Positions 23,726-28,436 of a DNA stretch of 64,000 nucleotides are shown in pieces. The position numbers were made by a program, and so were the translations under genes. The stretch's first letter is position 1. Each line of letters begins with the position of its first letter. The stretch comes from Macrostomum lignano. Taxonomy: Eukaryota. Where the stretch lies: NCBI GenBank assembly GCA_002269645.1, contig NIVC01000694.1, positions 1 through 64,000 of the forward strand, read 5' to 3'. The notes below the pieces were generated by a model that was given only the letters and a program-made list of their open reading frames with translations, ran no database searches and had not been told where the DNA came from.

Positions 23726-26700
23726 ATGAAGGCTGCAGTGCTATATATTGTTGTCGAGTGCACTGTAGAAAATCATGAACTGCCTGAAGTGATAGTGGGT
23801 GAAGGCGAAGATGCGTGTAAATTCACTTTAACTTACGAGACGAAGAAAGACAACAAGTCAATTTTTTCCGGTTCTGTTACTACGACAAATCATCAAACGC
23901 TAACCATCATAAAAAATGGCAAAATCAGCCGGTTTGACCTTGAGCTGCCACTAGCGAATTCGGTGCGAATTCATGCAAACGAAATAATTACTGACGGAAA
24001 TTAAGAATTGCAGCTGAAGGTTCTCCCTGTATTCACCGTCAAACTGGAACTTTGCCTGCGCAATATTCCAGCTGCTGCTTATGTTTTCGGAAATTGCAAA
24101 GAACTCGATTTCAGCAGGAAATCGCTAATGATACAAAGCAGTGATGGTATATTTAGGAGGAATGTGAACCTGACTATGGTAAAGCTTGACGATGGCAGCC
24201 TGCTGCATTGGTTAACTGCTGACTGCCTGTGTCTGGCCTTTCAATTCGGTGACAATCAATTTCCAGCAAAAAAAATTTAAGCAAGTCAAAATTTTTGGCG
24301 ACTGCCATCCGCTGCAATCATTTATTTTAGAGCTGGATTGGAACACCAAACATTTTTTCTGTCTACAGGAGACGGGACATAGAAGTGAAGTTCTTTGTGC
24401 AGGAAACGAAATTTAGGGTAGACAAAATTAGTGTGTGCAGCGATGCCCTCGGCAACATCAAGCTGAGTCCTCAATCTCGGTTCAGCCGGACAACTTCCTG
24501 GATGAGCCAAATTACACAGGTGACCACTCGCTTCAATCATTCTGAAAAAGACACCCAGTCAACTGTCACATTGTCACTTGATTGCTGCTACAAAGGTGAG
24601 TCTAGGAAGAAGGTTGAAATCAAACTTGCTGAGGATTCAATTGCCGGTGCAGATCGCTTTTTGATCGTGTGCGATGCGGACCTCGAGGGATTCACCATTT
24701 TGCCAGCGCTGAGAGTGCCGCTTCATTTTCTGCTGCAAGTGGAAGATTTTGTTGCTGAGGCCGCTTGTGTGTCCATTTTAGGAAACTTTTTTAATCAGCA
24801 CGGAATTGAATTGAAGTTGGATCCAGAGATAAATAACTGCTTTGTTGGTGTGGCCGAAATCGAGCTCTGTTTTTATGGTAACAGGGCGATTTGCTTCGAC
24901 TCGGAAGACATTAATGATCAGCCACTCTATAAATGTCAAGTGACAAGAAATTGTTGCCAAAAAAACGGAGATAGAAGTTTCTCTAGTGCTAACGGCAAGC
25001 TTCAGGCCCACCTTTCCTAGCAGCTCACTTGTACCAACATTCGTCATTATGCATGAGTTGAGGAGCAACATGCCGCATCATCTATCTCTTTCTATAGATA
25101 GAGAACTGCTTTTCCATCTAAACTCCGCAAGCGAAGAGCTGTCTGTAAAGTTCAGCAATGCACCAAAACTGCGGCTGAAGCATCAGATCCGAACCGGAGG
25201 CCCGCTGGTTGTTTTATTCAGCCAGGAAGACCAACGTTTTTTAATGGAAAACGAAATTCTGCTGGTAGGTGTCGGATCTCCAAGCACATGCCACAGGCTC
25301 ACTGTTCCAAGGATTCTACAGCATAAAAAGTTTCTCGTCTGTCAAAATGAGCCTCTGAAAATGCTCACTGCCGAAGATATCGAATGCCAGTTTGCTCTCA
25401 CTGGGTGCAGACCCGAGTTCGGACTGAAACTGTACATCGCAGGCACGTGTCCCGAACTGGGAAACGGAGCACCACTGAAACAGAACAAGCTAAAGTTTGA
25501 GCAAGGTCGCTTTCAGTTAACAAAACAAATCCTTGCCTGCCAAAGGCCCAGTGGTGACGGCCTGATTTCGTGGGGCAGCACTGATCAGGATCTCACCAAA
25601 TTCTGGGTGTTACGCGAATCCCCTAGTGGCAGATCGGAGCTGCTGCTGTCAGTTTTGAAACCTGGACGAAATGAAATTTGTTGGGATGAAAATTCCTCGC
25701 TGCAACCTTTGAAAATGAAAATGAAATTTGTTCTTTCTGTCTCCAACGAGGCAAATGATGCAAATGGTCTGTCTGTCTATGTGTCTGTATGTCTGTTTGT
25801 CTGTATGTCTGTCTGTCTGTCTGTCTGTCTGTCTGTCTGTCTGTCTGTCTGTCTGTCTGTCTGTCTGTCTGTCTGTCTGTCTGTCTGTCTGTCTGTCTGT
25901 CTGTCTGTCTGTCTGTCTGTCTTTCTGTCTGTCTGTCTGTCTGGAGTCAAATGATGCAAATGAGTCAAATGATCCAACTTTGAATGATGCCATCAAAGTT
26001 GGTGTGCATGAGAAGAGTCTGAACTTACAGGTTGAATCAAATCTCTACATCACAGAACTTTTCGATGCAGTTTTATTTGCAAACGACAAGGAATTCGAAA
26101 TAATTTTAAGCAACCAGAAAGTTTCACTTCCGCTAAACTTGGACAGCTTAAAAGGCAGTCAGTCGAGAACAGCAGAAAAGCCTGTGCTCGTGTCCGCAGT
26201 TTACCGGGGCGCAAACGACCCCAGCTCTGTAGCTGCGGCGCAGTACTTCGGAAAAGTGAATTTCGAATTTCGAGTTACGGACAGCCCTATTCAAACGCAA
26301 CAGCGCCTGTTTTTACAAAGTTCCAATTGCGAAGAGCTCAGAAATGTTGAGCTACAAAGCAACAATGGAGTTTTCACGGCTTCGGTGAACATCGAAATGT
26401 GCCAAATCTCTGGGAATCTGCTGGCTTGGAATCCCTTTGCAAACAGAAGTTTGGTTGTCAGTTTCTATCTGGAAATTGTTGATTAATATGGGAACCGTGA
26501 ATTACGAGAGCAGAAATGCTGGAATCTTGAAGCACCAAATACTGATAAAAGCGGCAAAGAGTTGACGTTCATTGTAGCAAAAGAATGGAATCAAGAGCCT
26601 GTCGTTTTTCGGCCATTCTCTGCCGAAATAAAACTGTTAGTAGACTGCGATGTCAGCAGTGAGACACCAGTATATATCAGAGAGTTGCGCATTCAGGCTA

Positions 26701-28436
26701 ACAATACCCAACATGAGCTGAAGAGGATCACCGCAACTAAGAATAACGGAAGGACCATTGATCACTGGAAAAAGAATTTTTCCATAGCCGAGCCACTCAC
26801 TTGTCTTGAAATCTCAGGTAAGTACTCTCGTAGCAAAGAAAACAATAGTCCAAAAGTTGACATTCCCTTGAAAAGAAATACATTTTTGAATTTCACTCCC
26901 AATGCTCACGGGTACACAATCCACGCAACTGTGAGCGAAAATTTATCCAAGGTTGAGCTGCAAGTAGCGCCCATGGTAACTGTGATTTTGCACATTGCTT
27001 GCAGCAGCAATGAGCCGTGTGAAGCGATCAGTTTCAAATTAAACAACGACGAATATAAATCATTAAGCCGATTCTACAATGCTCAGCGTACGGATGAACT
27101 CGTCTTCGTTAAAGTAAATCTGATTGAGATGTACAGATTCAATGGTCAACTGTTGCTTGAAAACAAAGAACCCCTTAGGCTAAAGTTCCAAAGAAAACGA
27201 AGAGACATGCAAACATCGGATGAGGTTGGGTTCAGAGATCTTGATCTAAGATGCGATGCAGCTGCCGACGAGTGCCACTTCTGGTACAATGCACAATTCA
27301 ATGGCGGAGGGGATCTTGATTCTTTCGTGAGACATGTTAAAATCAATATGGAATCCCGGCTCTCTGATTCGAAGGGGCAGCTATTGACAAACATAGCAGG
27401 AGAAACGAAAAGAGAGATCAATATACCCATGTGCTACATTCGTGACGAACTGTTGCTTCCTGGAAAAGTAAGGTTGATGGTCATCGACGGTGCTCATGTC
27501 TGGAAAGACATCCGACTGTTCTCGAATCAGTTAGAAGGAAAGCTGTATTTTAATGTGGAACTTCTGCCCAGTGAAATGCACCGAGTGTTTCCCAGCATGA
27601 CAATGGTTCAGCTGCCCAGAGATTCCGTTCTGCATATATTTCAATCGGCCCTCCATTCTGGCTTACCCAACTTGCCAGATGAAGAGAAATCATATGAGAA
27701 AGTCAGAGACAGCTTGGCTAAATATTTGGTTCCTGTAGTCAAGGAGAATGGAGATTACGTGAAGGAAGACCCGGCCAATCAACCGCATCAGTTTCACGAT
27801 ATCTGGGGCGAGGACCCTGGCTCAGACACAGAGGACAATCCAGAGCCTCAGCCAGAGCCGCGGAGTCCTCTGACCTACGCGCGCCTGAAGCACAAGAGAA
27901 ATCCTCATAGCGCAAGAAATTTCGCCTTTGAAGCTCAAAGTCGTTTAAACGTTGTGTACCATAGTCGTGAAGCCAAGGTTTTCAGGCACCTCAGCGATGC
28001 AGCTCAGAACTGCAACTCGTGTAGAACAGCTGTGCACGCCAGGTACGAGTACCATGGAAGAGAACTGTACGAGTTTAACCAGCCAACAACACATGACCAG
28101 TACATAGAAGTGCTGACTCAGATTGCCAGGAAGTTGAGGAGTCGCGAATGCAGGTGCCAGATCGATTCGCAGTTCCTCATCCGCCACTCAGCTGCCATCG
28201 TTCGAGGAAGACTCGAAGCATTCCTAGTCGGCAAAGGGTGCCGAGAAATGCTGAGCAAGGAAAACTACCACGATTGGAAGAGACACGCCGAGGCCGCAAG
28301 CTCCTGGTTTGTGCTTCTAGTAGCAGTTTGGCACAGGTGCGAAGGCCTGATCAGTGGGAATACGGTGAATTTCAAAGATGCCATCAGGGAGCAGCAAGTG
28401 CCGATCCCAATGTTTTACCGATGGCGAAGCGACTGA
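23726..28436 (+). pseudogene. Disrupted ~1,500-aa intronless ORF, unknown family, with repeated beta-sandwich (CBM20-like) units
   Basis: Six consecutive ORF-track pieces join via in-frame TAA stops (24002, 24278, 26484), compensating frameshifts (~24375, ~25015) and a 196-nt insertion. Repeated motifs are visible across pieces. Confidence 0.75.
25767..25943. repeat. (GTCT)n microsatellite flanked by a 19-bp duplicated target
   Basis: GAGGCAAATGATGCAAATG at 25748-25766 and GAGTCAAATGATGCAAATG at 25944-25962. Confidence 0.9.

Follow-up and report, generated by a model that had tools for sequence, protein, structure and literature searches.

The window analysed here is a 64,000-nucleotide stretch of the genome of the flatworm Macrostomum lignano (contig NIVC01000694.1 of GenBank assembly GCA_002269645.1, positions 1 to 64,000 of the forward strand). 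At 23726-28436 its plus strand carries a near-open reading frame, in which long open stretches follow one another with shifts of frame. This candidate is very probably a disabled paralogue belonging to the single-exon gene family of BOX15_Mlig026577g1. Judged from its sequence, it is a duplicated (unprocessed) pseudogene in a neopolyploid animal. Its intact sister is the M. lignano hypothetical protein PAA93800.1 (BOX15_Mlig026577g1, UniRef A0A267H685; hereafter P0001) of 1,525 aa, whose gene, on contig NIVC01000020.1 (locus L001), consists of a single exon of 4,578 nt with no break between ATG and stop. The candidate is colinear with this exon over all 1,525 codons, at 92.3% DNA identity in a base-level alignment and 81% protein identity, and shares with it three CBM20-like units and the C-terminal domain. 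The two genes share lineage and flanking genes, and the window copy differs by six frame-breaking lesions. An initial annotation of the window had proposed one gene of ~1,500 codons rather than separate genes and had supposed that intact paralogues may exist; both proposals are borne out by P0001, whose single exon is colinear with all the pieces.

Six open runs on the plus strand, numbered here as pieces 1 to 6, make up the candidate: 23693-24001 (frame 2, ended by a TAA at 24002), 24005-24277 (frame 2), 24331-25017 (frame 1), 24944-25951 (frame 2), 25725-26483 (frame 0, ended by a TAA at 26484) and 26487-28433 (frame 0, 649 codons, followed by the stop TGA at 28434). These runs agree with the limits 23726-28436 that had been given to the gene. 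Within piece 1, the ATG and codons 1-92 (23726-24001) form an N-terminal module that matches P0001 residues 1 to ~100. Given the base composition, 1,505 random codons should contain ~86 stops and an open run of 649 codons has a probability of ~3e-17, so the runs extend far beyond chance. The GC content of the candidate by codon position (0.51/0.36/0.48) is that of coding DNA, with a third-position value (GC3) far under that of the conserved neighbouring genes (~0.9). A tblastn search of the pieces against the 64-kb window did not find a second copy.

The lesions were mapped by base-level alignment to the intact P0001 exon. The first is an indel cluster at 23987-24011 (+7/-3/-4 relative to the intact copy), which leaves ~24 nt out of the ancestral frame and, through its +7/-4 pair, makes the TAA at 24002-24004. 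Three single-base insertions follow: one in an A8 run at 24268-24275, where P0001 has A7 (a shift from frame 2 to frame 0), an added C at 24351 (frame 0 to frame 1), and one in an A7 run at 24959-24965, where P0001 has A6 (a shift from frame 1 to frame 2). The fifth lesion is a 196-nt insertion (25748-25962) absent from the intact copy, where 19-nt direct repeats GAG[G/T]CAAATGATGCAAATG at 25748-25766 and 25944-25962 flank a (GTCT)n microsatellite at 25767-25943. The sixth is a nonsense TAA at 26484-26486, where the intact copy has GAA (Glu863); it is the sole clean nonsense substitution (GAA>TAA) among the stops of the candidate. The terminal TGA at 28434-28436 lies at the stop position of the intact copy, just downstream of a 9-nt deletion that removes three codons from the window copy, which has several in-frame indels relative to P0001 and lacks, for example, a 13-codon Lys/Glu/Arg-rich stretch. 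Translation from the candidate ATG would end after 92 codons, and with six frame-breaking lesions a full-length product would be impossible.

This map upholds part of the repair proposed in the initial annotation and replaces the rest. The 196-nt insertion and the repaired length of 4,515 nt are confirmed, the insertion being the (GTCT)n tract between the 19-nt repeats (4711 - 196 = 4515). Three TAA stops had been counted: those at 24002 (made by the indels) and 26484 (GAA>TAA) stand, and the one at 24278 is an out-of-frame artefact because the ancestral frame between 24268 and 24351 is frame 0. The ~80 nt from 24268 to 24351 had been reconstructed wrongly, since it is in frame 0 that KFKQVKIFGDCHPLQSFILELDWNTK there matches the paralogue. 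The two compensating frameshifts that had been proposed are instead the three +1 insertions. Introns are ruled out as the cause of the frame changes, the intact paralogue being colinear through all of them.

The surrounding DNA is duplicated along with the gene. On NIVC01000020.1, as in the window, the gene is followed by a HAD gene and a 350-aa gene, and colinearity extends through genic and intergenic DNA alike, at 87-94% nucleotide identity (~90% for the segment as a whole). A third copy of the segment, on NIVC01001367.1 (L005), is ~99.7% identical to the window in unique DNA, and the position of the gene between the same host genes is kept in all three paralogous segments. Three paralogous genome copies following a recent genome duplication, with a genome-wide subgenome divergence of ~2.4%, have been described for M. 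lignano (PMC10733133). The neighbours of the candidate in the window are animal genes, encoding a Kv1-type channel, TMEM101, a MyTH4-RA protein, a HAD hydrolase and a C2H2 zinc-finger protein.

That the open reading frame derives from a mobile element or an endogenised virus, and not from a host gene family, we regard as very improbable. The family genes are single-exon and multi-copy, their GC3 of 0.45-0.56 compares with ~0.9 in conserved host neighbours, and a retroelement and a repeat resembling a miniature inverted-repeat transposable element (MITE) are present in the window, all of which would suit such an origin. However, the position of the gene relative to its host neighbours is conserved across the three segments, neither long terminal repeats (LTRs) nor terminal inverted repeats flank it, and Pfam detected no reverse transcriptase, integrase, transposase or capsid domain. 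Furthermore, its C-terminal domain has no viral structural neighbour and the other loci of the family are solitary. A mobile-element origin was rejected on the lack of flanking repeats and the syntenic position.

The divergence between the copies indicates when the gene was lost. In Nei-Gojobori estimates for the window copy and the intact copy, synonymous divergence (dS) was 0.083 and nonsynonymous divergence (dN) 0.079, giving a dN/dS of 0.95, compared to 0.11 for two neighbouring genes (Fisher P 1.5e-9 for the difference). By part, dN/dS was 1.06 in the CBM20-like units, 1.44 in codons 872-1231 and lowest, at 0.58, in the C-terminal domain. Neutral simulation, with random substitution at half the observed divergence, gave ~7 stops as the expectation for each lineage, against none in the intact copy (P ~0.001) and a single substitution-type stop in the window copy (P(<=1) ~0.009). 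In addition, the length of 21 of the 29 indels is divisible by three (P 2e-5). Most of the divergence between the copies would have accrued while both stayed open. Because only one substitution-type stop is present where ~7 are expected and so many indels preserve the frame, the loss appears recent, in agreement with the recent inactivation that had been suggested. We infer that a fast-evolving but selected gene has recently been disabled in the window segment and its near-identical twin, as ordinary post-polyploid fractionation. The window copy itself, as a pseudogene, most likely has no function.

Several observations weigh against this reading. The corroboration from L005 covers two of the lesions: the stretch of that contig compared here starts at window position 25648, downstream of the four 5' lesions. 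Two of the three +1 insertions fall in homopolymers (the A8 and A7 runs) and could be errors of a long-read assembly. The uninterrupted 649-codon 3' open reading frame may still be transcribed or used. With dN/dS near 1, even the "intact" copy could be under little protein-level constraint. Finally, the L001 copy differs from the window by ~8% in the gene and by a dS of 0.05-0.06 in neighbouring genes; standing above the genome-wide 2.4%, it may go back to an older segmental duplication and not be a subgenome partner, although the age of this duplicate leaves the pseudogene conclusion unchanged.

The homopolymer insertions, together with the description of the Mlig_3_7 assembly as error-prone (PMC10733133), raise the alternative that the gene is intact in the animal and that the lesions are assembly or sequencing errors in a repeat-rich polyploid long-read assembly. 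We consider this highly unlikely. The 196-nt insertion and the TAA at 26484 are not assembly artefacts, because both are found identically in the separately assembled L005; neither the insertion nor GAA>TAA is a homopolymer error, and the contig that shares them differs from the window elsewhere. Simple homopolymer slippage does not account for the added C at 24351 or for the +7/-4 indels either. Gene annotation is also at odds with an intact gene. In the L004 record, which is 100% identical to window 47425-26367 and so includes the candidate over window 26367-28436, no gene was called over that part. An older assembly yielded P0002 (UPI0007A1FD52), a chimeric model of 4,007 aa stitched from plus-strand open reading frames across the window; it holds antisense readings of the Kv, zinc-finger and TMEM101 genes as well as three fragments of the pseudogene, and skips every lesion-bearing stretch.

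The uninterrupted 3' frame raises a second alternative, in which the locus is only partly dead: 26487-28433 would still yield, from an internal start, a shorter protein that includes the complete helical domain. The length of the run (649 codons) is similar to that of the short family members P0004, P0005 and P0007 (529-649 aa), the C-terminal domain has the lowest dN/dS, and window 25648-28500 shows 0 differences from L005 over 2.85 kb where ~8 are expected at the local rate of ~0.3%. Nevertheless, we think this improbable. The first ATG of the 3' frame is at residue ~163, and no evidence of an upstream promoter or splice was found; the short members keep CBM20 units, which a product of the 3' frame would not. 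Since the identity between the contigs spans the dead microsatellite and the stop as well, it points to gene conversion or a locally low divergence, and not to selection; an assembly effect is a further possible cause of the zero-difference stretch.

The reconstructed protein, like P0001, contains a repeated unit. Three copies were supported in the window: unit 1 at 24026-24271 (motif FGNCKELD, P0001 residues 110-193) in piece 2, unit 2 at 25355-25687 (LYIAGTCPELGNG, P0001 555-668) in piece 4, and unit 3 at 26238-26483 (SSNCEELRN ... LLAWNPFANR, P0001 781-871) in piece 5. Units in these three pieces are significantly related to each other in a decoy-controlled profile, and self-comparison by blastp detects the internal repeat between pieces 2 and 5 (E 6e-6). 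The iterative profile was seeded with a Pfam-recognised unit of the family member P0005 and run against the family together with five-fold local-shuffle decoys; it converged on 15 units, three of them in the window and three in P0001, and admitted 0 decoys.

Two lines of evidence relate this unit to the CBM20 starch- and glycogen-binding module. With a gathering score of 23.3 bits, the Pfam CBM_20 model (PF00686) gave 37.8 bits (E 1.6e-9) for a unit of P0005 and 24.0 bits for the P0001 counterpart of the piece 4 unit. When the 15-unit profile was compared with all Protein Data Bank (PDB) sequences, 8 of the 9 matches were CBM20 domains; the matches included the starch-binding domain (SBD) of a maltotetraohydrolase (7czj, E 0.023), human GPCPD1 (2z0b, E 0.084), 1cqy, 1gcy and 4jcm, with beta-amylase and CGTase among them. 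The repeated unit is thus CBM20-derived, as had been proposed, and the three units in the window are predicted to share that descent. The resemblance is limited to the first half of the module, namely beta1 (V.F.V) and the hydrophobic strand ending G-x-x-x-x-L-G-N. The half shared with PF00686, as represented by human GPCPD1/GDE5 (2z0b) and the maltotetraohydrolase SBD (7czj), is the N-terminal one; the C-terminal half is not detectably similar, except for a W..NR remnant in unit 3. In the family-specific motif, G-N-C-x-E-L-G-N, Cys takes the place of the hydrophobic residue or Pro of CBM20.

The CBM20 assignment also meets counter-evidence. On the window itself the Pfam match to the piece 4 unit reached 13.2 bits (E 0.077), under the gathering score, and all Pfam matches on the window pieces were sub-threshold. 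None of the three window units, which read ELDFS, ELGNG and ELRNV, retains the Trp of LG-x-W that belongs to site 1, and it is replaced in 14 of the 15 units of the family. The later second Trp is present in the window units (LLHW, LISW, LLAWNPFANR); this residue near the C-terminus and the Trp of LG-x-W are what we take to be the pair forming binding site 1 of CBM20, as in the SBD of Aspergillus glucoamylase. Outside the three supported units, the AlphaFold2 (AF2) model of the piece 6 region had a per-residue confidence (pLDDT) of <50-65 in its beta part, and Foldseek of the whole piece 6 model against PDB returned noise only (E >= 0.29); no beta-sandwich of ~100 residues, the fold of CBM20, was obtained. 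Weak Foldseek matches of piece 6 to complement proteins and cholesterol-dependent cytolysins were disregarded, since they fall in this low-confidence beta region.

At least five CBM20-like repeats had been counted in the initial annotation. The three in pieces 2, 4 and 5 hold by profile, by Pfam on paralogues and by the PDB comparison, and the two in pieces 3 (VSILGNF...) and 6 (VFVKVNLIEM...) lack sequence support, with an hhalign probability of <=2.5%. The former lies in the frame-1 segment, a beta-rich linker region at 24352-24958 (P0001 ~225-425); piece 6 begins with a further beta-rich region (26487-27575), of unassigned fold, for which AF2 drew strands at low confidence and in which dN/dS is 1.44. 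A second repeating unit type had also been described; it is not significant, with a z of 4.6 in the window and only 0.9 in the intact copy, and an hhalign probability of 0.1%. The unsupported units and the second unit type may be beta-sandwiches.

In contrast to the beta-rich region before it, the C-terminal domain was modelled with confidence. It occupies 27576-28433 (~286 aa), is all-helical and carries the motifs LVP..G.Y, HDIWG, SAAIVRGRxEAxLV, H..AA..WF and FYRW. An alignment of 11 sequences over ~290 residues (A1) has invariant columns A206, V209, R210, G211, R212, E214, H237, W244 and F245, all of which are present in the window copy. The motifs LVP..G.Y, HDIWG, YH.RE, SAAIVRGRxEAxLV and FYRW recur among the members, HDIWG in those from Macrostomum, and each family protein has one to three copies of the domain. 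The AlphaFold2 model, built from a shallow alignment, has 12 helices with a mean pLDDT of 79.9 and a predicted TM-score (pTM) of 0.84. The last ~300 aa had been called His/Cys-rich and helical: they are helical and enriched in His (16 residues, 5.3%), and with 6 Cys they are not notably Cys-rich.

Searches with this domain agree with the earlier impression that it matches nothing familiar. No Pfam family recurs among the members for it, and PDB sequence searches with a 624-aa open reading frame and with the domain profile returned nothing. Foldseek placed nothing close to the model, whether in PDB (best E 1.1, TM <0.3) or among the viral structures of BFVD (best E 0.62). What appeared at E>1 and TM<0.3, generic helical bundles with a few haem-oxygenase-like diiron proteins, was rejected. 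A scan of JGI metagenomes for the pattern AAIVRGRxE gave no relatives. As modelled, the domain is without a known relative in the libraries searched (Pfam, PDB and BFVD).

A phmmer search of 1.84 billion representative sequences with the 649-codon piece retrieved 11 proteins (E 0 to 6.5e-5), the best being P0001 with 84% identity over query residues 2-648. P0001 and P0003-P0008 are named M. lignano hypothetical proteins; outside this species, only three sequences with the C-terminal domain were found, from an SRA run and ENA assemblies (environmental or SRA), with SRR23264968 and ERZ27293363 as the sources of P0009 and P0010. Apart from these three, the family is confined to Macrostomum among the sequences compared. 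A word-indexed protein search returned nothing with the 624-aa open reading frame and one ENA protein only with the C-terminal domain profile, and the M. lignano proteins surfaced in the exhaustive HMMER scan alone. The genes for P0001, P0003 and P0005 are single open exons. That of P0003 (L003, 8001-12707) has an uninterrupted frame of 1,568 codons and a deposited protein of 1,348 aa; the annotation seems to place an "intron" within a KESDQ repeat.

The members share an architecture of beta-rich N-terminal regions with one to three CBM20-derived modules, combined with one to three ~290-aa helical domains. In the pieces and nine members, CBM_20 was the only Pfam family detected, and no signal peptide, membrane segment or hydrophobic segment was found in the M. 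lignano members. No literature was found on Mlig026577 or on Macrostomum and CBM20. The family is new in the sense of being uncharacterised, though not in that of being unrecorded, its proteins having already been deposited as M. lignano hypothetical proteins. It is a lineage-restricted family of uncharacterised CBM20-bearing proteins.

Other features were noted in the window. A MITE-like cluster (22214-22998), with inverted repeats of 39-47 nt that are 85-87% complementary, lies ~0.7 kb upstream of the candidate ATG, and a minisatellite (29 bp x58, within 28855-30580) begins ~420 nt past the candidate stop and is present in the paralogous loci with differing copy number. Further large minisatellite arrays occupy 6760-9125, 11246-12642 and 18836-19480, the last with 19 copies of a 34-bp unit at 100% uniformity. 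On the minus strand, 50690-54808 holds a degraded LTR-type retrotransposon with gag-, aspartic-protease-, reverse-transcriptase- and integrase-like open reading frames, as judged by eye. Also on the minus strand, 561-674 matches the Rfam potassium-channel RNA-editing hairpin K_chan_RES (53 bits, gathering score 51) and adjoins a Kv1-type exon at 737-1237; the match may be mere conserved pore/S6 coding sequence. On the plus strand, 58004-59053 is a complete open reading frame of 349 aa that includes a coiled-coil region and a hydrophobic hairpin rich in Gly; its sole match is a weak holin-like Pfam hit (E 0.007), and no exact product is on record. The MyTH4-RA gene region at 44000-45500 differs from L005 by 15-32 nucleotides per 500 nt, far above its surroundings.

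Laforin (EPM2A), STBD1, GPCPD1 and RNF213, through its N-arm, are cytosolic CBM20 proteins of animals. Like these, the family fuses CBM20 or CBM20-like modules to a domain that is not amylolytic, in proteins that lack a signal peptide; unlike the CBM20 domains of glycoside hydrolases, its units sit in a predicted cytosolic animal protein. Unlike all four, P0001 and the window copy have three CBM20-like units instead of one, and the partner is an orphan helical domain. Pfam on the pieces and nine members found none of the partners of the known proteins (DSP phosphatase, GDPD, AAA+RING), and the M. lignano members show no N-terminal membrane anchor. Beyond the CBM20 profile, no sequence similarity to laforin, STBD1, GPCPD1 or RNF213 was detected. 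The CBM20 of RNF213 has been covered previously (PMC11549300).

By analogy with these four proteins, we tentatively suggest that the family consists of cytosolic multivalent glycan-docking proteins, with glycogen as the most likely target. The CBM20 array would dock multivalently on a cytosolic polymeric glycan, most likely glycogen, and the helical domain, with its invariant R-G-R-x-E, His and Trp-Phe, would act there as an effector or adaptor. Our confidence in this proposal is low because the site-1 Trp is missing. In calling the protein a glycan sensor or effector, the initial annotation went too far, the site-1 Trp being replaced in all three window units; the role is better put conditionally. 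Fast evolution with the frame preserved would also fit an immune or reproductive role. It is conceivable, though we judge it rather unlikely, that the family represents a new kind of cytosolic glycan-targeted effector, in which divergent CBM20 arrays deliver the helical domain to glycogen or to foreign or partner glycans, and that its members are under diversifying selection as immune or reproductive-conflict genes unique to macrostomid flatworms. This reading is drawn from the dN/dS of 1.4 in region 872-1231 and from the keeping of the frame despite protein-level neutrality; in it, the helical domain would possibly be an enzyme, through the invariant R-G-R-x-E and His and through HDIWG.

Taken alone, the window copy carries little weight, as a routine casualty of gene loss after polyploidy. 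With one intact and two broken copies, however, the locus offers a clean, datable case of early fractionation in a neopolyploid animal. The candidate also points to a small flatworm-restricted family that joins the CBM20 module, in up to three copies, to a confidently folded orphan helical domain. If the units do bind glycogen, the family would add a fifth architecture to the animal CBM20 proteins and open a way into the glycogen biology of a model flatworm that regenerates. Otherwise, it would be a case of a carbohydrate module re-used for another purpose.

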